IMG/VR virus record: IMGVR_UViG_3300005977_000075
Span: 1 to 17,869 of that record
Length of the DNA: 17,869 bases
Reading direction: 5' to 3' (one strand)
Part shown: piece after piece, positions 3,903 to 14,450 of the stretch
Position numbering within the stretch: the first letter of the stretch is position 1
Layout: every line of letters starts with the position of its first letter
The notes under the pieces: model-generated
Databases searched by the model: none
What the model saw: the letters and a program-made list of their open reading frames with translations, nothing else
Told to the model about the DNA's origin: nothing
Position numbers and translations under genes: made by a program

Positions 3903-4454
3903 ATGAATAAATCAACACCTAATAATAAACTTTTCGGTGAACCTCCTTTTAGGTCTAAAAAAATAGAAAAAATATTTGAGGAGTTATCAAAGGGAGGAAA
4001 GCTAGCACGAGAGCTTGCGGAATTGATCAATGTGCCTTCCAAGCAAATCTATCCCAGGGTCAAGAGGTATATCGAAAAAGGCTGGATCTGTGTGAAAAAG
4101 ATAAACAACATTAACATTTATTACTTGTCAGAAACTGCTAAGAAAATATTCGAGTTACAGAGTAGTAGTTTTGAGAAGGTTAAGGAGAAGGCAGAACATT
4201 TAATGGGAAGAAAATTGGACGAAGATGAATTAGAAATTCTAAAGTTCTTCTATGAACTAAATGGCAGTTATGTAGAAAGGAATGAAAACGAATCCATAGC
4301 AGAACAGGTTTACTACGCACTGAAACTGAAGAGGATAATACTCTCTAGGGTAACTGAAATACTCACTGAATTTACTAAAGCTAAGGTACTTTTTGCATAT
4401 AGGTTAAGAAATGGTGTAATTCTGAAGGTAAGACTGAATAAGAATCTTCTCTAA
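3903..4454 (+). CDS. Winged helix-turn-helix DNA-binding protein (possibly two wHTH domains)
   Basis: N-terminal KIFEELSKGGKLARELAELINVPSKQIYPRVKRYIEKGWICVKKINNINIYYLSE is a typical ArsR/TrmB-like wHTH. The C-half (ESIAEQVYYALKL...VTEILTEFTKAKVLFAYR) suggests a second wHTH. Confidence 0.85.
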   Translation: MNKSTPNNKLFGEPPFRSKKIEKIFEELSKGGKLARELAELINVPSKQIYPRVKRYIEKGWICVKKINNINIYYLSETAKKIFELQSSSFEKVKEKAEHLMGRKLDEDELEILKFFYELNGSYVERNENESIAEQVYYALKLKRIILSRVTEILTEFTKAKVLFAYRLRNGVILKVRLNKNLL

Positions 4455-4830
4455 ATCGAGAATAAGAAACACCTAATTCTATCTTTCATGTTTCTCATTC
4501 TTGTAATAAATATTCAAACTAACGTAACCACCAGTTTAATTTGTAAAAAGTTCTTGAAAGTTAAACTAATTCTTTGAATTAGTTCTCCAGTTTGCTTCTA
4601 AAAATCCTAGATTCTCTAAAAAGAGACTTACTATTTATTACTACTACTCGACTTTTCACAACAAATAAAGATGTCAATAGACGTTCTTTTACTGGTGTCA
4701 ATTTTACGTATTTTTATGAAGACTAACTTACACTTTCTGAGACTAATTGAATTATTACTTTTACTTTTAGGAAAATTTTTGCGAAAAAAAGATGCCAAAA
4801 GAAAGGAGGCTTCTTTACTTACCTGCACAC
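4455..4830. other. AT-rich non-coding region with inverted repeats (candidate origin/unwinding element)
   Basis: 13-bp IR 4459-4471/4489-4501 (1 mismatch) and a perfect 9-bp IR AACTAATTC-TTT-GAATTAGTT at 4564-4584. No convincing ORF. Confidence 0.4.
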
Positions 4831-4964
4831 TTACCGTGTTCCGCTTACTTTTCTCTGCTCTTCTTCTCTGCTCTTCAGTAGTAGTTATTACCAGCAGTTG
4901 AATTTTTCTCGGCAGGCTGGGGCTTAAACAAATCCCCCTCAAACAGCTGTTTAACGCTTTGTTC

Positions 4965-5055
4965 TAGCATACCCCGCTCGTCGTGGTGGCGTCATTCCTG
5001 CCTAACTTGCTAGGCAGAAGATTTAAATACCAGTCCCCACAAGAGTATAGTTGTG
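4965..5055 (+). promoter_or_regulatory. Duplicated promoter: CCTAAC-NN-GCTAGG palindrome, BRE (AGAAGA), TATA TTTAAATA
   Basis: Closely similar copy at 5851-5929; the same architecture occurs on the minus strand at about 13973-14007. Confidence 0.8.
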
Positions 5056-5511
5056 AGCCACATGAGTCAAACCCCCAAAACCATGAGTCAAACCCAAAGT
5101 CAATCCCAACCCAAATATGAGAACTGCCTCTTAGTTTCAAGGCACAGGTTGCTATCATCGCAGGAAACTGATTTGGCGACAATATGTGGAAAAATCAGTA
5201 AGGTGGATACACTGCCAAACAATATAGATGAACTAAAAAAGATGGTCGACTTTTACGACGCAATAGTAGGGGTAATTCCGCTGACATTTCAGGTTCAACT
5301 ACTGCAAATGAAAAAAGCAGTATTGTTATTTTACATGGAAAGTTTGGGAACCACAGGATCAAAACAAGAAGCAGAGCAACTTTTAGCTGGGAGGGAGGGT
5401 GTCATCCTGCCTCCCTCCAGGGAGGGTGAATCATACCGTGTGAGCGTATACCGGGGTATTAACAAAGTGAAGGCGATCAAGGTTGAAGACGAATTCATCA
5501 TACAACACTAG
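5053..5511 (+). CDS. Small Rossmann/CARF-like protein resembling Csx16/Csx20 (candidate ring nuclease/anti-CRISPR)
   Basis: CLLVSRHRLLSSQETDL and DAIVGVIPL resemble the hhSRH and D-x-h-h-G-x-h-P-h motifs of Csx16-like proteins. The start could be GTG 5053 (leaderless), ATG 5062 or ATG 5083. The CDS is well supported; the family call is tentative. Confidence 0.55.
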   Translation: MSHMSQTPKTMSQTQSQSQPKYENCLLVSRHRLLSSQETDLATICGKISKVDTLPNNIDELKKMVDFYDAIVGVIPLTFQVQLLQMKKAVLLFYMESLGTTGSKQEAEQLLAGREGVILPPSREGESYRVSVYRGINKVKAIKVEDEFIIQH

Positions 5512-5531: not shown

Positions 5532-5681
5532 ATGGTTAACTGCTTAGAATACCTGAGCAATAACAAGTACAATCTCAGTGGGTACAGCCCCGATACATTC
5601 TATTTTCTTTTTAACACAGACACAGAAGGAGAAGAAGAATGCGAAGCGTTATTCCTGTATCTTGAAGCCAGGTACGGGTAA
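5532..5681 (+). CDS. Small acidic hypothetical protein, 49 aa (MVNCLEYLSNNKYNLSGYSPDTFYFLFNTDTEGEEECEALFLYLEARYG)
   Basis: Manual translation. Strong SD GGGGTGG at 5521-5527, 20 nt after the previous stop, followed by T-tracts. Confidence 0.65.
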   Translation: MVNCLEYLSNNKYNLSGYSPDTFYFLFNTDTEGEEECEALFLYLEARYG

Positions 5682-5850
5682 AAGTCAGCCCATTTTTTAT
5701 GTTTTTCACCATAAAACAGCTGTTTTAGGTTAGGGTTGGCTGGTGGGTTCATCCACCCCCTCCACCCCAGTTTGTCCCTACACTCACTTTCATTTTGCAC
5801 TTTCATTTTGCAAGACTTTTGAAGTGAGAACTTCTTCACTCATCCGTGTT

Positions 5851-5929
5851 TTAGCATCCCCGTCGTGGTTCTGCCTAACTTGCTACGTAGAAGATTTAAA
5901 TACCACTCCCCACCAAGAGTATAAGTGTG
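5851..5929 (+). promoter_or_regulatory. Second copy of the duplicated promoter (CCTAACTTGCTA...AGAAGATTTAAATACCA)
   Basis: Aligns with 4965-5055. Confidence 0.8.
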
Positions 5930-5936
5930 GAGTAAG

Positions 5937-6065
5937 ATGTTATCATTAGATAGAATGAAATTGTGGTACTATTACGCTAATAAAGAAGTGAAGTTTACCG
6001 ATATAGAGAAAAAGCTATTATCTGAACTAGGTATTAAATACCAGTCCCACGGTGGTTATGCTTAA
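5937..6065 (+). CDS. Small hypothetical protein, 42 aa (MLSLDRMKLWYYYANKEVKFTDIEKKLLSELGIKYQSHGGYA)
   Basis: First ATG after the duplicated promoter, with GGAG upstream. Its TAA overlaps the next ATG (TAATG). Confidence 0.6.
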   Translation: MLSLDRMKLWYYYANKEVKFTDIEKKLLSELGIKYQSHGGYA

Positions 6066-6472
6066 TGATGATTAGGTGCTTTAAGATTAAATCTTCTTCT
6101 TCTAATGAAATATTTACTAGCCTCAATATTAAAGCTAATGAAATAGTTTGCATAGGCGACTCTCAATGGCTTATTAATCTTACCAGAAGAAAGGCGTTCA
6201 TTTTACTACCGGAAGAAATGGACAACCTGCTGAAACTTCATCTTCCTAACGAATTCAAAGTCGAAGTAGTGTCACGCCATCGCTACGAGCCAAGGAAACA
6301 CTACACTATTTACAGTATTTATAAAGTGTCACCTGGCAAGCGTCGGCGTCGGTATTTCATAGAAGTTTATGATGGATCGAGTACTGCATATACCTATCAT
6401 TTCTGTGAGTCGCGTGTTAAGTGTATGGCTCTTGAAAAAGATCTTGAAGAGGACAATATAATGCTTTATTAA
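6065..6472 (+). CDS. Hypothetical protein, 135 aa
   Basis: ORF coupled to the upstream small ORF, GGTGG SD-like upstream. No family recognised. Confidence 0.7.
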   Translation: MMIRCFKIKSSSSNEIFTSLNIKANEIVCIGDSQWLINLTRRKAFILLPEEMDNLLKLHLPNEFKVEVVSRHRYEPRKHYTIYSIYKVSPGKRRRRYFIEVYDGSSTAYTYHFCESRVKCMALEKDLEEDNIMLY

Positions 6473-6571
6473 TATTACTAAAGCGAACGACAATACTCGC
6501 CACTCGCCCTTCTAGGTATTTTGTTGGTCAATGTTGTCGATGTCGATTATCTCTTATCTCTTATCTTTTTC

Positions 6572-6600
6572 CACCTGAGACCCCGTCCATAAGTGCGGGG
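6572..6600 (+). mobile_element. Degenerate IS200/IS605-like right-end hairpin remnant
   Basis: CACCTGAGACCCCGTCC...GCGGGG shares 17 identical nt with the reverse complement of 16275-16311. Confidence 0.5.
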
Positions 6601-6665
6601 AGCTAAGTATAAATATGAATTTTGAAAAACGATTCGTTTTACCAAGTTCATGGTAAATCGTTTAG

Positions 6666-6785
6666 TAAATAGTTTAATATTGTTTCGCAAATATCGTTGT
6701 CTATATCTTTTACGTCAGTGAGAGATCCTCTAAATAGTTTAATATCGTTTCGCAAATATCATTGTCTATATATTTTTCGTCAGTG
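6666..6785 (-). repeat. 55-bp imperfect direct repeat (6666-6720 and 6731-6785, 4 mismatches) duplicating the 3' end of ORF 6710-7081
   Basis: Read directly; period 65 bp. Confidence 0.92.
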
Positions 6786-7081
6786 GCAGACCCCCAATGT
6801 CCTCGTAATTTGCACACTCCTCTACTATATACTAAATCTATGTTAGGGCCTCCAAAAGTTATACCAATGTCGAAGCCTACTAGTTCTCTACTTGGTAAAG
6901 AGGTGTAAAGTATTATGTCGATGGCGTCGTCTATAACCTCTTGTAACTTGTCCTGCTGGAATTTGTCCTTAAGTTCCTTTGCTATAAAGTCCAAATTTTT
7001 TTCTAATGCTGTACGGTTATCTGCAGAATTTATCAAAATATCTAACATGTCCTCTTTATTTTGACCAAATTCCTGCGACAT
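6710..7081 (-). CDS. Acidic hypothetical protein, 123 aa, with a FGGPNI...GHWG motif
   Basis: Leaderless-type gene: CTTAAATA TATA about 22 nt upstream, preceded by AAACAGCTGTTT. Function unknown. Confidence 0.8.
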   Translation of the reverse strand: MSQEFGQNKEDMLDILINSADNRTALEKNLDFIAKELKDKFQQDKLQEVIDDAIDIILYTSLPSRELVGFDIGITFGGPNIDLVYSRGVCKLRGHWGSATDEKYIDNDICETILNYLEDLSLT

Positions 7082-7155
7082 AAGAAAATGTTTTCACAGC
7101 AGTATTTAAGCATTTCGTAAACAGCTGTTTGAGGTGGTATTTCCTTGGCGAACCC

Positions 7156-7332
7156 CTACTGCTTCTCCCGTTTGTCGATGAGGACTTTTCCGTGGATTTT
7201 TAACACTCCGGTTCTGTCATACTCTGCTAACGCATCAAGGTATTCTCTATAGGTCTCGATAATATAATCTACCCTGTTATGCATTCTCTCCAGGATCTTT
7301 TTCTGCTCGTCGGTTAATTTATGCGTTACCAT
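7156..7332 (-). CDS. Small protein, 58 aa (MVTHKLTDEQKKILERMHNRVDYIIETYREYLDALAEYDRTGVLKIHGKVLIDKREKQ); possible stand-alone Phd/Doc-type antitoxin mimic
   Basis: Manual translation (below the ORF-track cut-off), with its own TATA-like TTATAAATA upstream. The amphipathic helix IIETYREYLDALAE resembles Doc-neutralising helices. Function is inferred. Confidence 0.6.
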   Translation of the reverse strand: MVTHKLTDEQKKILERMHNRVDYIIETYREYLDALAEYDRTGVLKIHGKVLIDKREKQ

Positions 7333-7929: not shown

Positions 7930-8000
7930 GAGATGATTTTAGTTCTTAGATTAAAAAAACATATGTTTTAGCTCTAAGGTTCTTCTCAGCACCTTCTCTT

Positions 8001-8032
8001 AGGCTAACAATTATGAAGGCTAACAATTATGA
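8001..8032 (+). repeat. 16-bp tandem duplication AGGCTAACAATTATGA x2 overlapping the stop of 8027-8653
   Basis: Read directly. Confidence 0.9.
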
Positions 8033-8653
8033 GTAATCAGCGTGGATCTTGAAAAAAAGGTAATAACCTAAGGAGTCCTTTGAGGGTATAGGTGTTCTAT
8101 CGGCAACTAATGCGTGTAATAATGCTCCGCTTAGCTCAGATATATAAGGGAATACTTCTTTTTTCTTTATATATATCCGTATAGGCATCCCGAAAAATCC
8201 TACTAGGAAATTAGCGATGTTGAATATATCTTTAATCCTAGAATCTTTTGTTGTTTTTATGTTAGTCTTATGTAGTTTTAAGTACACTGTTGTTACGAAG
8301 CGTAAATACAACGAATAATAAGCGGTTATTAGGAAATTAGGGTTATCAGAATTTAATACCTCTTTGTAGAACTCCTCTTCATTTGTCTTCAACCCGTCAA
8401 TAAGTTTTTGTAACCCGTTCATTACCATATTAACGTATTCTTCTATAGTCCCGTTACTGTCAAACATAAATCCAAAATCCTCCTTTATTTTTTCAGCTTC
8501 TTTTGACAGCATTTTTAACTTGTCCTTGTCTTCATTTAGGGCTAACATTAGCATATCCTCATGCTCACGTTTGGCTAAATAATCCCACATCTCCAAGCGG
8601 ACAGGGAAATATTCTTCTAAAAGGCGAGAAAGGTTAGCTAACATAATTACCAA
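8027..8653 (-). CDS. Hypothetical alpha-helical protein, about 205 aa
   Basis: Long ORF; AAAAG-TTAAATAT BRE/TATA upstream on the minus strand. Confidence 0.8.
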   Translation of the reverse strand: MVIMLANLSRLLEEYFPVRLEMWDYLAKREHEDMLMLALNEDKDKLKMLSKEAEKIKEDFGFMFDSNGTIEEYVNMVMNGLQKLIDGLKTNEEEFYKEVLNSDNPNFLITAYYSLYLRFVTTVYLKLHKTNIKTTKDSRIKDIFNIANFLVGFFGMPIRIYIKKKEVFPYISELSGALLHALVADRTPIPSKDSLGYYLFFKIHADYS

Positions 8654-8755
8654 TCTAATTTAGTTAGAAGGTTAGTATATTTAACTTTTGATCGGTTGCC
8701 GTGGAAGGGCGTTGAGGAGGTCAGCAATTTAAAGCGAACATGGTAAGTTATAGAC

Positions 8756-9274
8756 ATGAAGCGAGGGTACAGGAAAAAAATCAAGAGGGTAAAGACACAC
8801 AACCACGCCATACACATATATGCATTTCCATGGGAGTGTTACAAAGTCAGGGAAATAAGCGATGATGTTTATGAATTGTTCCAAGCAGATTGCAACGACC
8901 CAGAAGCTAAAAGAAAAGCGGAGACTTCAGTGACAATAAACGTGAAAAAGAGGGGTATATACAACATTTTGTTATTTCCAGAGAAGATAGTTTTCAAATT
9001 AGCGAAAGAAGAACATAGATACACTGTAACTAATTTACTATTTTTCCCCAGAAAAGTATACGATCTGCAATTCGATGACGAGAACCTTATTTTAAAATAT
9101 GTATATCCTTCTGGGAAAAAAGTAGGCACTGTGAAAATCAAGTTAATGAAACCCGTTGTATTTGAGAGAGATAAAAAAGACCACTACAGTATAATGAAGT
9201 TCGGGAAACCTGACGATTACCAGATTTTGAAAAAAGAAATTCTGGAAAAGGTGGAAGTTGTCGCTAGTAAATGA
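8756..9274 (+). CDS. Basic hypothetical protein, 172 aa
   Basis: TTTAAAG TATA about 22 nt upstream (leaderless); overlaps the ATPase gene, suggesting an operon. Confidence 0.8.
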   Translation: MKRGYRKKIKRVKTHNHAIHIYAFPWECYKVREISDDVYELFQADCNDPEAKRKAETSVTINVKKRGIYNILLFPEKIVFKLAKEEHRYTVTNLLFFPRKVYDLQFDDENLILKYVYPSGKKVGTVKIKLMKPVVFERDKKDHYSIMKFGKPDDYQILKKEILEKVEVVASK

Positions 9275-10181
9275 TTATATAAAATTAAATGATACCGACC
9301 CAGAAAAGGCACTCTTGAGAGTAGATTACAATACACTGTTACCTATGTTCGAAAAATACTACACACAGGTGTATGATGCTAATGTGAAGTTCATCGATTT
9401 CCCCTACATGGAGAAACAGTACATTGAATTATCTAGAAAATATTACATGGAAGGTATTGCCGATTTAACGGTTCTCATGATGCATACAATATACCAGATC
9501 ACGATAGACAGAAAGGAACACAAGTTCGAAAAAATAAGACCTGTCCCGATTGACACCGGTCAGACGACGATCGTTAGCGGGGAGTCCAGGGGAGGGAAAT
9601 CCTCATTGGCGTTGTGGCTTGCGTACGCGTTATATGGCGATTGGGACGTCGCTATCGCACACATTATCATCGATCCGTTGCAACTCGACGACCTAATTGA
9701 GGGAATGAAAACATACGGGATAAACAAGATCCCGATGATAATTATTGATGATGCCGGTATAGGTTTCGGAAAACAGGTAGGGAAGATGGACAGACTTAGA
9801 CTAGAAAAGATACATAAATATGCACAGACATGGGCAATAAAGTTCAGTAACGTGTTGATGACTATACCGTCGGAAACTAGGCTTTCTGGTGTATTGATGA
9901 AAGCCATGCCATCGTCGTATGCTATTACAATAAAACCATTGACAATGATGACGTCTGAGGCTCACGTATACAAGAACGTTGTCAACATCACAGGAAAGTT
10001 ACTGAAGACTAAACATACACTTAGGGATTACAACAGTGTTAACGTTGGGCTTATCTTAAAGAACGAGCTAAAAAACAAGTATTCGCATATAGTGTATACA
10101 CCAAGGCTAATGCCAGACGAAGCTTACGTGAAATATAAGCAACTCAGAGAAGACTATCTATACATTATCGCGAAGATGTGA
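9258..10181 (+). CDS. P-loop ATPase (possible viral packaging/morphogenesis ATPase)
   Basis: Walker A TIVSGESRGGKS and Walker B MIIIDDAG; GGTGGA SD before the TTG start. The specific role is inferred. Confidence 0.88.
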   Translation: MSLVNDYIKLNDTDPEKALLRVDYNTLLPMFEKYYTQVYDANVKFIDFPYMEKQYIELSRKYYMEGIADLTVLMMHTIYQITIDRKEHKFEKIRPVPIDTGQTTIVSGESRGGKSSLALWLAYALYGDWDVAIAHIIIDPLQLDDLIEGMKTYGINKIPMIIIDDAGIGFGKQVGKMDRLRLEKIHKYAQTWAIKFSNVLMTIPSETRLSGVLMKAMPSSYAITIKPLTMMTSEAHVYKNVVNITGKLLKTKHTLRDYNSVNVGLILKNELKNKYSHIVYTPRLMPDEAYVKYKQLREDYLYIIAKM

Positions 10182-11147
10182 ACCTTTTTTTACAGAGGGG
10201 ATTGAGGAGGAACTCAACCTACTTATTATTTCTCTTCTTCTCAGCGGGAACTCTGTAGCAATTGCAGTTAGGATGCCGTAAACTATTCCAGTTACCCCAA
10301 AAAGTTCCTGGAAGAGCAAAGTCCACAGATAAACCCCGTAACTCACCTCGCCTAAGAAGACCGTTACACGACTAAGTACCCTGGGTGGCTCCACGATAAG
10401 GAGGGCGAAAGCGGGTAACGCCAAATTGTAAATCAAGAACCTTGTGAAGAACTCATATACAAATTCATTAGAGGAAAATACAAATGTAATAAGAACATAT
10501 TGAGCGTAAAGTATTAGTATGAAATATTTGGCTTTTTTGGCTGGTTCACCTTTCTGTTTCTTCTTCAAAAGGTAAGCAATTATTCCCCACCCGTATGCCC
10601 CTAACCACAAGGGTGGCATGAAGTAAAGTAAGTGGAACTCGTCGTAAGGAAGGAAGACGATAAAGAGACTGTAGAAGAACGATATAAATACCAATAAAAC
10701 AGCTGTTTGAAACTTTGCTTTATCGCTCACTCCATGAATGACGGGGATAGCTAAGTACATCCATTCCTCCAGCTGGAGAGACCAGAAGAGATATTGAAAG
10801 GAAAACGGTGCAAAAACGAAGGAAACAAACGCAAAATGGAGTATCAAGTCGTAATACGTCACGCCCATATGGAACACGTATCTGTCGGCTAAGAATACAG
10901 TGACTACGGCAAGGAAGTAGAGTGGCCATATCCTCCTCACCCTTCTCGTGAAGTAACGAGCTAGTGAGGGGTTTTCGTCGAGTCTGTTCAGAAGGAGAAA
11001 AATCGATAGCTCGAAAAATAGGGGAACACCCAACCAACCAGGACGGAAAAATGTGAGAGGGACTAGTTGAAGAGTCCACAGATGATATAAAGCTACAGAA
11101 AAAGCAGAGAAAAAACGTAGCTGGGCTATTCTAGGGTCATACTCCAT
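10158..11147 (-). CDS. Acyltransferase family 3 (OafA/YrhL-like membrane O-acyltransferase)
   Basis: RIAQLRFFSAFSVALYH, GWLGVPLFFELS, YFTRRVRRIWPLY, FWSLQLEEWMY and FLGEVSYGVYLW match the AT3 motif series; about 10 TM segments. Confidence 0.92.
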   Translation of the reverse strand: MEYDPRIAQLRFFSAFSVALYHLWTLQLVPLTFFRPGWLGVPLFFELSIFLLLNRLDENPSLARYFTRRVRRIWPLYFLAVVTVFLADRYVFHMGVTYYDLILHFAFVSFVFAPFSFQYLFWSLQLEEWMYLAIPVIHGVSDKAKFQTAVLLVFISFFYSLFIVFLPYDEFHLLYFMPPLWLGAYGWGIIAYLLKKKQKGEPAKKAKYFILILYAQYVLITFVFSSNEFVYEFFTRFLIYNLALPAFALLIVEPPRVLSRVTVFLGEVSYGVYLWTLLFQELFGVTGIVYGILTAIATEFPLRRREIISRLSSSSIPSVKKGSHLRDNV

Positions 11148-11878
11148 TTTAGTCGCCTGGCATATATCATGCCGATCTTCTTGTTTCCTTTAATTGTAAC
11201 GTTAAACCCTGATGCTCTAAGCAGATCTGCAAGATGTTGAACGCCGTTATGATATTCTATGATAATTGTGTGATATCTACTAATCAAACGTGGTGGAACA
11301 GCACCAAAGAAATCGTATTCACACCCTTCACAATCGACTTTAAGTACAGACTCATAAGGAATATTATATTTCAGCGTTATAATATCTAAATTATTCGAAA
11401 GTCCACACTCACAACGAATCGGCTCAACGACGTCTTTTACATTGTTTTCCCTTATGTTCTTCTCTAAGTACCACACATTAACGTCAAACGCATAGACTTT
11501 CTTTGCACCGTTCAAGACAAAATAAATTGGCGAATCGCCTATCCCCGCACCGACATCAACTACTGTCCTTCCTTTTACATCAACATCATATGCACCGTCT
11601 CTGAAAATTTCCCCGAGAGCCACGAAACTATTTGTATCGAAATAGAACTTTAGTATCCTGTCCCTGTATCTAACTTGTATAAATCTATCATCAACATAAA
11701 TTACGTCAAGATCGCGTAACGTTGTAAAGAAATAAGCGTGCCATTTCGACTTTATTTCTACTTCCAACCCGTTCCTTAAGTTAGCTGTGAAAGGGAACTT
11801 GTTTAATGCTGTCTTAAACATGACATTTAACGGATTATGATATGCGGACATATACGCCTTAAACGTTTTGAAATCCAT
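11126..11878 (-). CDS. FkbM-family SAM-dependent methyltransferase
   Basis: VVDVGAGIGDS (motif I), KVYAFD, LKVDCEGCEY, IIIEYH. Confidence 0.92.
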   Translation of the reverse strand: MDFKTFKAYMSAYHNPLNVMFKTALNKFPFTANLRNGLEVEIKSKWHAYFFTTLRDLDVIYVDDRFIQVRYRDRILKFYFDTNSFVALGEIFRDGAYDVDVKGRTVVDVGAGIGDSPIYFVLNGAKKVYAFDVNVWYLEKNIRENNVKDVVEPIRCECGLSNNLDIITLKYNIPYESVLKVDCEGCEYDFFGAVPPRLISRYHTIIIEYHNGVQHLADLLRASGFNVTIKGNKKIGMIYARRLKWSMTLE

Positions 11879-13946: not shown

Positions 13947-14058
13947 TCCTGGTCAAACATATGTATGCCAAAACTGGTATTTAAACCTTTTTGCCTAACC
14001 AGTTAGACAAAAAGTAGGGTGATGGAAAAACAGCTGTTGGAGCTATTTTCTCTTTCGT

Positions 14059-14132: not shown

Positions 14133-14450
14133 ATGGGAAAAAGAATCGTCTCGTTTAGAATAGAACGTAGTGCACTTGAATTGATTGATTCTAAGAACAA
14201 GAATAGATCTTCAGTGATGAGAGACGCTATAAACTACATTATCCGGGAAGGTATAACAAAGGACGATATACTAATAGCCCTATCCATCCCGATAGACGAG
14301 AAGAGGCAAACAAGTGTTAAAATCGATGAAGAGACGTTAGACAGGCTAAAACTAATTGCGGAAGAGAACCATATACAAGTAAGTGAACTCATGAGAATCG
14401 CAATATGGAAACTCCTCCTGAAAGACGGAGCAGTTAGTGTGCCCCAGTGA
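14133..14450 (+). CDS. Tandem ribbon-helix-helix (CopG-like) transcription regulator
   Basis: Two RHH units: RIVSFRIERSALELID...NRSSVMRDAINY and RQTSVKIDEETLDRLKLIAEENHIQVSELMRIAIWKLL. Leaderless, TATA at 14102-14109. Confidence 0.88.
   Translation: MGKRIVSFRIERSALELIDSKNKNRSSVMRDAINYIIREGITKDDILIALSIPIDEKRQTSVKIDEETLDRLKLIAEENHIQVSELMRIAIWKLLLKDGAVSVPQ

Follow-up and report, generated by a model that had tools for sequence, protein, structure and literature searches.

A divergent Csx16-like gene in relatives of the Sulfolobus monocaudaviruses is a candidate viral ring nuclease gene at the AcrIII-1 locus

The window analyzed here is the whole of the IMG/VR viral contig IMGVR_UViG_3300005977_000075 (17,869 bp), which is kin to the Sulfolobus monocaudaviruses SMV1–4 and to Acidianus tailed spindle virus (ATSV) of the Bicaudaviridae. 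An earlier note on this DNA had read the gene at 5053–5511 on the plus strand as a candidate viral ring nuclease of Csx16/Csx20 type, directed against type III CRISPR (clustered regularly interspaced short palindromic repeats) immunity and distinct from AcrIII-1. The open reading frame (ORF) was confirmed and encodes 152 aa from the GTG at 5053. The ATG at 5062, which gives a 149-aa product, is judged from sequence to be the likelier start, since the SMV4 and SMV3 genes have their first ATG at the aligned position. Sequence profiles, structure models and analogy with known systems together favor a divergent Csx16-like viral ring nuclease, an anti-type III CRISPR protein interchangeable with AcrIII-1, to which a probability of about 0.6 is given. 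The gene and the parts of its product are as follows; models were made with AlphaFold2 (AF2), and pLDDT is the predicted local distance difference test score.

5053–5511, plus strand: gene for the Csx16-like protein, matching phrog_31280 (E 1.2e-59).
5053–5115, plus strand: N-terminal leader, residues 1–21, disordered and rich in Q, S, T and P, with pLDDT <50 for residues 1–16.
5116–5508, plus strand: globular Rossmann-like domain with the order β1-α1-β2-α2-β3-α3-β4-α4-β5-β6, predicted from AF2 models and the joint alignment.
5137–5145, plus strand: S29-R30-H31 loop directly after strand 1, a proposed catalytic or phosphate-binding dyad aligned to the invariant R8-H9 of Csx16.
5257–5283, plus strand: D69-A-I-V-G73-V-I-P76-L, comprising strand 3 and the first part of helix 3, aligned to GD-x-V-I-G-x-L-P of Csx16.
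5437–5439, plus strand: R129 on the extra strand β6, near-invariant in the viral family and without a counterpart in Csx16.

The protein belongs to a virus-only family whose closest named relatives are an SMV3 protein (60% identity) and ATSV_A144 (47%), and which further comprises phrog_31280 and more than 100 hot-spring metagenome proteins. The family is small, with about 25 clusters at 50% identity after searches of 5.8 and 1.8 billion proteins; a profile search added a second clade with the consensus VGRHxLLPxQ. No Pfam domain was found in any of the family proteins. The contexts inspected were all viral contigs or virus genomes, the long contigs being of the ORFan-rich crenarchaeal virus type; among them no CRISPR locus was present, and no family member stood beside cas genes or was fused to Csx1. 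Such all-viral contexts would be expected of an anti-CRISPR copy.

The three motifs quoted in the earlier note (NCLLV-SRH, LLSSQETDL and DAIVGVIPL) are all found where it had described them, and the conservation of R30, H31 and P76 at ≥90% over 80 diverse homologues shows that they are not chance features. In the alignment of these 80 members P76 is the only invariant column, and the residues conserved in at least 90% are V28, R30, H31, L33, L34, Q37, L54, P55, L61, M95, E106, L119, P121 and R129. D69 is retained only in the clade nearest to the window protein.

The AF2 model of the window protein (pLDDT 89) showed a predicted alpha/beta Rossmann-like fold in which residues 22–28 form strand 1 and the SRH loop follows right after, in agreement with the fold expected in the earlier note. 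A Foldseek search of the model against the PDB returned weak matches only (E ≥2e-3, template modelling (TM) scores of 0.2–0.37), and the best of these, class I methyltransferases, HypX and CheY-like proteins, are Rossmann-type as well. No match at E <1e-3 was obtained, and no Crn1 or CARF structure was among the top 50. The PDB set searched contains no Csx16 structure, so the missing match says nothing against a likeness to Csx16. PDB sequence searches with the window protein and with the family profile also gave no match. A methyltransferase reading was rejected on the low TM scores and the lack of a glycine-rich S-adenosylmethionine loop after strand 1.

Among the viral structures of BFVD, the window model matched only the ATSV homologue (A0A120L048, 144 aa, the top match), inferred from its length and identity to be ATSV_A144, and one further viral protein of 133 aa. 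A0A0N9NIQ7 (133 aa) matched the window model with TM 0.54–0.61 and 16% identity, and A0A2H4PAY0 (133 aa) was listed for both the window model and a model of Csx16. Judged from the models, these two may represent additional, remote archaeal-virus examples of this fold.

For comparison with Csx16, a Csx16 consensus was verified against PF09652 (E 2.7e-42) and used only to fetch real genes; the 38 real loci fetched were confirmed as 'Csx16'/PF09652 in the protein database. A hidden Markov model (HMM) built here from Csx16 matched 92 of 144 family proteins at E ≤0.01, compared with 3 of 144 reversed sequences, and the viral-family HMM matched all 143 Csx16 proteins and no reversed one. Profile–profile alignment of the viral family to Csx16 with hhalign gave a probability of 90.6% (E 1.3e-6, score 41) for one pair of alignments (A2 against A3) and of 57.5% (E 1e-4, 67 columns, score 33) for another (A4 against A5). 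In the controls, 100 column shuffles averaged 12 (standard deviation 2, maximum 20) with none reaching the observed score, and reversed profiles scored 13–15. Diverse alignments were needed for this result, as a narrow alignment of close homologues (A1, effective sequence number 2) reached a probability of just 7.6%; against single Csx16 sequences of methanogen viruses the family also aligned weakly (1.7% and 15%).

Curated models pointed in the same direction, below their thresholds. The Pfam model PF09652 (Cas_VVA1548) gave a sub-threshold match for 8 of 80 members scanned singly, the best at 3e-4 and 21.4 bits against a cut-off of 25. Only 12 PADLOC families matched any of the 80 members, three of them Csx16 models (7, 6 and 3 members; best 4.7e-5); the CARF_HEPN_CSX16 model was matched too, and the Csx20 model was matched by two members (best 8.3e-3). 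The window protein also had a weak PADLOC match to 'Hp2' (PDLC03005; residues 26–102, E 0.0025, profile positions 30–102 of 359).

The likeness extends to the register of the motifs. The longer hhalign alignment placed R8-H9 of Csx16 on R30-H31, and D39, G43 and P46 on D69, G73 and P76. Among 41 Csx16 sequences R8 and H9 do not vary; D39, G43 and P46 of the Csx16 motif are invariant residues as well. A joint MAFFT alignment of both families together with the methanogen-virus Csx16 proteins left R, H and P as its sole invariant columns. Along the chain, the AF2 model of Csx16 (pLDDT 96) runs through its elements as the viral model does, in keeping with a derived Rossmann/CARF-like fold of five strands in a sheet between helices, and its top match among the BFVD viral structures was again A0A120L048 (probability 1.00, TM 0.56, E 4e-3). 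Of the Csx16/Csx20 assignment made in the earlier note, remote kinship to Csx16 thus stands by HMM–sequence, HMM–HMM and reciprocal structure searches, while the Csx20 signal is much weaker. Csx16 is a cA4 (cyclic tetra-adenylate)-specific ring nuclease by experiment (PMC12409355). The earlier note had called Csx16 and Csx20 proposed degraders of cyclic oligoadenylates (cOAs); the activity is real, and the word "proposed" is outdated now that both have been demonstrated to act as cA4 ring nucleases (PMC12409355). On three genome contigs (L016, L023 and L044), proteins of about 510 aa combine a Csx1-like CARF/HEPN part with a C-terminal Csx16 domain, which fits Csx16 as a self-limiting ring nuclease.

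The strongest functional clue came from the genomic context. DUF1874 genes were located in related viruses by tblastn with STIV B116 (DUF1874/AcrIII-1), and the SMV4 homologue was found at 48103–48408, inside a stretch whose flanks match the window. The features of the locus are as follows; BRE is the transcription factor B recognition element.

4915–5074, plus strand: upstream flank homologous to SMV4 (76% identity, L047 2794–2952), the left boundary of the swapped cassette, ending in the leader.
5013–5033, plus strand: archaeal BRE/TATA-type element GGCAGAAGATTTAAATACCAG, 20–30 nt 5' of the start codons, with the TATA TTTAAATA at 5022–5029.
5532–5681, plus strand: conserved 49-aa ORF, phrog_11751, directly 3' of the Csx16-like gene.
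5565–5728, plus strand: downstream flank homologous to SMV4 (74% identity, L047 3378–3538), the right boundary of the swapped cassette.

Between these flanks the window and SMV4 are unrelated, the former carrying the Csx16-like gene and the latter a PF08960 STIV_B116-like gene (E 6.4e-18). The first ~22 nt of the leader (to 5074) still align with SMV4 at the DNA level, and the SMV4 DUF1874 frame extends upstream, through a similar in-frame Q/S/T-rich leader, to an ATG aligned with window position 5062. The window protein begins with VSHMSQ, and so do the DUF1874 proteins encoded on metagenome contigs L060 and L088. Comparable low-complexity leaders were seen on the DUF1874 proteins of SMV4, L060, L088 and L104, and on a 201-aa ORF in L053. 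In SMV3 and ATSV a family member is present and DUF1874 was not detected, whereas SMV4 and ATV show the reverse; the window, too, lacks DUF1874. The cassette is missing from this locus in SMV1, and searches of SMV1 and SMV2 detected neither of the two genes.

The small downstream ORF ties the two gene types together. It follows the approximate pattern C-x-x-L ... Y-N-L-x-G-Y-S-P-D-T ... E-E-C ... L-E-A-x-Y-G. An ORF of 47–54 aa lies directly after DUF1874 in SSRV1 (gp33/gp32), ARV2 (gp37/gp36), ATV (ORF117/ORF48), ARV1 (ORF108/ORF54, with ORF108 matching the DUF1874 HMM built here at 6.6e-32), SMV4 and contig L104. It lies directly after the Csx16-like gene in the window, in SMV3 and in 20 of 21 metagenome loci; in ATSV it stands one gene further on, with ATSV_B172 between. 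Over rudiviruses and bicaudaviruses this ORF is thus preceded directly only by a DUF1874 or a Csx16-like gene, ATSV excepted, and one conserved slot over two virus families holds either the known viral ring nuclease or a Csx16-like protein. Its product may act together with viral ring nucleases or regulate them.

The common slot 5' of phrog_11751 is, taken as an analogy with AcrIII-1, one of position and not of family membership. A diverged DUF1874/AcrIII-1 (Crn2) member that is not Csx16-like at all would likewise suit a locus and a downstream partner held in common with DUF1874 genes, and for this reading one could add that a partial similarity of Csx16 to DUF1874 has been noted (PMC8284326) and that residues 28–111 of STIV B116 aligned by tblastn in ATSV_A144 (L002 1060–1299) with 26% identity, non-significantly (E 4.4). 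It was rejected on the hhalign comparison of the family with STIV B116, which gave a probability of 0.2%. No family member matched PF08960 among the families listed, the 50 best Foldseek matches in the PDB included no DUF1874 structure, and the protein has no AIGH motif, so that DUF1874 membership appears very improbable.

The promoter of the gene is conserved at the same position in SMV3 and SMV4 and is an exact match to an element shared across the virus group; an mRNA without a leader, or with a very short one, is probable. The earlier note had placed the gene behind a strong duplicated promoter. This holds only in part: one exact BRE/TATA-like element is present, and nothing close by is duplicated except for 14 nt, CATGAGTCAAACCC, repeated exactly and in direct orientation inside the coding leader (5061–5074 and 5082–5095, spacing 21 nt), which duplicates the peptide MSQT. 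The group-wide 21-nt element, GGCAGAARRTTTAWATACCAG, occurs 84 times in 82 related contigs, mostly before other genes. In the window, near-copies with 3 mismatches were found at 5886–5906 on the plus strand, before the next gene block, and at 13974–13994 on the minus strand (0.01 expected by chance). Genes behind the element include recurrent ORFs of 127, 61 and 137 aa, and on contig L053/L101 two exact copies are separated by 350 nt. The genes behind it look like a co-regulated class of the virus group.

Several observations weigh against a Csx16-like ring nuclease. The window protein had no Pfam or NCBIfam match even at E ≤10, and no curated model reaches its threshold for the family. The β3-α3-β4 unit carries most of the HMM signal, and there Nitro_FeMo-Co (25 of 80 members) and Peripla_BP_6 (18 of 80) match equally weakly. 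The reciprocal Foldseek E-value (4e-3) is marginal. The mutual-exclusion pattern is based on four genomes. The gene lies in a variable accessory island, and its promoter is of a type used throughout the virus group; the argument from a common promoter was downgraded for the latter reason, as shared expression signals alone prove little. Lastly, the invariant R72-G-x-E-L motif of Csx16 is not kept, the window protein having L98-G99-T-T-G at the corresponding place, with the glycine alone shared in an alignment of low confidence.

Some of these points would also suit a Rossmann-like viral protein that has no role in cOA signalling, whether nucleotide-binding, cofactor-binding or regulatory, whose likeness to Csx16 would be that of any β-α-β unit and whose locus would be an exchange hot spot. 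The sub-threshold database matches, the comparably weak Nitro_FeMo-Co and Peripla_BP_6 hits on the same unit, the further insertions relative to SMV4 on both sides of the region, the empty locus of SMV1 and a promoter type that serves many other genes all agree with it. A generic likeness, however, leaves the common register of the RH dyad with Csx16 unexplained, and it would not lead the PADLOC matches to concentrate on Csx16, Csx20 and CARF models, nor make the viral family the best match of the Csx16 model among all viral structures. Nor would it account for a 47–54-aa ORF that, over two virus families, is preceded only by DUF1874 or by the viral family. A protein without a cOA role is therefore considered unlikely. 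A NifX/Nitro_FeMo-Co assignment was rejected separately, its matches being sub-threshold and confined to the second clade and to the β3-α3-β4 unit.

The loss of the R72-G-x-E-L element speaks for another rival reading. With the same fold and pocket, the protein could be a sponge that sequesters cA4 or another cyclic nucleotide and is no enzyme. Csx15, a relative of Csx16 and Csx20, is nearly without ring nuclease activity and has been discussed as a sponge, phage sponges are known, and all of the context evidence (the locus swap and the gene pair) fits a sponge equally well. Yet the R-H dyad is kept at ≥90% in a family that is otherwise 23–35% identical, which is the pattern expected of catalytic residues; histidine is the general acid in AcrIII-1 and Crn4; and the gene replaced at the locus, DUF1874, encodes an enzyme that keeps its AIGH histidine. 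A pure binder is accordingly regarded as improbable, and a Csx16-like ring nuclease, the reading of the earlier note, was supported by every in-silico test run, namely the fold, the kinship to Csx16, the RH register and the position in the AcrIII-1 locus and gene pair.

A mechanism for such a ring nuclease can be proposed. The gene would be transcribed from the conserved BRE/TATA promoter, and its product, which is small and by its model Rossmann-like (CARF-like) and is probably dimeric, would bind the cA4 made by Cas10 of the host type III CRISPR system. Sulfolobales type III systems signal through cA4 (PMC8284326). Cleavage of this ligand would fall to R30 and H31, in the loop that follows strand 1; H31 would serve as the general acid, and R129 may assist. 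As a consequence of this cleavage, Csx1-type CARF effectors would never be activated and the virus would escape type III immunity. By analogy with the histidine general acids H47 of AcrIII-1 and H15 of Crn4, R30-H31 is likely the catalytic dyad, and R129 on the added hairpin may stand in for the lost R72 of Csx16. In evolutionary terms the protein would represent a virus-specific, highly divergent branch of the Csx16 lineage that has replaced the non-orthologous AcrIII-1 (DUF1874) in a conserved two-gene module of ring nuclease and 47–54-aa protein.

A broader proposal is put forward more tentatively. The family could be a second family of ring-nuclease anti-CRISPRs in viruses of Sulfolobales and other Crenarchaeota, derived from Csx16, with an active site remodelled into an RH loop plus a hairpin arginine, interchangeable with AcrIII-1, and served by phrog_11751 as a dedicated partner or regulator of cOA degradation. 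This is possible, with the odds somewhat against it in this full form.

Other genes and segments of the window complete the picture of the locus. Upstream, 3903–4454 (plus strand) encodes a weak TrmB-like winged helix-turn-helix protein; the following ~600 bp (4455–5052) hold no convincing ORF and show no DNA similarity to SMV4 over 4542–4914, and SMV4 and contig L051 have a gene of 102–103 aa just 5' of the promoter. Downstream, 5729–7179 and 7979–8727 are blocks missing from SMV4 at otherwise collinear positions, with ORFs at 6065–6472 (phrog_28879, also in ATSV), 6710–7081 (minus strand) and 8027–8653 (minus strand), the last with a weak OTU-peptidase-like Pfam match (E 0.0046). Further genes encode a DnaA-like/AAA replication initiator (9258–10181, plus strand; phrog_11254, E 3e-130), an acyltransferase_3 membrane protein (10158–11147, minus strand), a class I methyltransferase (11126–11878, minus strand) and a ribbon-helix-helix (CopG) regulator (14133–14450, plus strand).

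No published account of the crenarchaeal-virus family, or of an exchange between it and AcrIII-1, was found, and to our knowledge AcrIII-1 is the sole ring-nuclease anti-CRISPR described so far for Sulfolobales viruses. A viral Csx16 is not new in itself, since canonical Csx16 genes exist in two methanogen viruses, the Methanobacterium viruses PhiF3 and Drs3; new are the divergent crenarchaeal-virus branch and its swap with AcrIII-1. PhiF3 and Drs3 are probably the 'two phage genomes' with Csx16 of PMC12409355. If the proposed function is true, a second family has been missed by standard HMM screens and viral cOA-degrading enzymes have been undercounted, the gaps of AcrIII-1 in bicaudaviruses such as SMV3 and ATSV would be explained, and the locus would be a natural case of non-orthologous replacement between two ring-nuclease folds. 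There is no solved structure of Csx16, and a thermostable, easily expressed relative would help to define its catalytic residues. The conserved 47–54-aa neighbor would be a new candidate partner of viral ring nucleases.

In comparison with known systems, the gene shares with AcrIII-1/Crn2 the slot and its SMV4 flanks, the type of N-terminal leader, the 47–54-aa downstream partner and the virus groups, and the two are roughly mutually exclusive; a histidine-based, metal-independent mechanism is predicted for both. It differs from AcrIII-1 in lacking both sequence-profile kinship (the hhalign probability of 0.2% with STIV B116) and the AIGH motif, and in belonging by prediction to a different fold class. 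With Csx16 (PF09652/TIGR02620) it shares a small single-domain Rossmann/CARF-like architecture with the same order of secondary structure, (S/T)-R-H directly after strand 1, D-x-V/I-I/V-G-x-L/I-P at strand 3/helix 3, and a glycine that comes after strand 4 and precedes an acidic helix. Unlike Csx16, the viral protein is ~30–50 residues longer, with the extra helix α2, the inserted β5/β6 hairpin that bears R129 and the disordered Q/S/T leader, and its family does not keep the invariant W15, H29, R72 and E75-L76. The viral family is found in crenarchaeal viruses only, whereas cellular Csx16 is also found fused to Csx1/HEPN (L016, L023 and L044). Toward Csx20 and Crn1, the CARF-type ring nucleases, the signal is much weaker than toward Csx16. 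The Csx16 proteins of PhiF3 and Drs3 are likewise encoded by archaeal viruses and have the RH and G-x-L-P motifs in common with the window protein. They are ordinary PF09652 members from tailed methanogen viruses, 32–39% identical to bacterial Csx16, whereas the window family is far more divergent, with added elements and 11–20% identity to Csx16 in the joint alignment.

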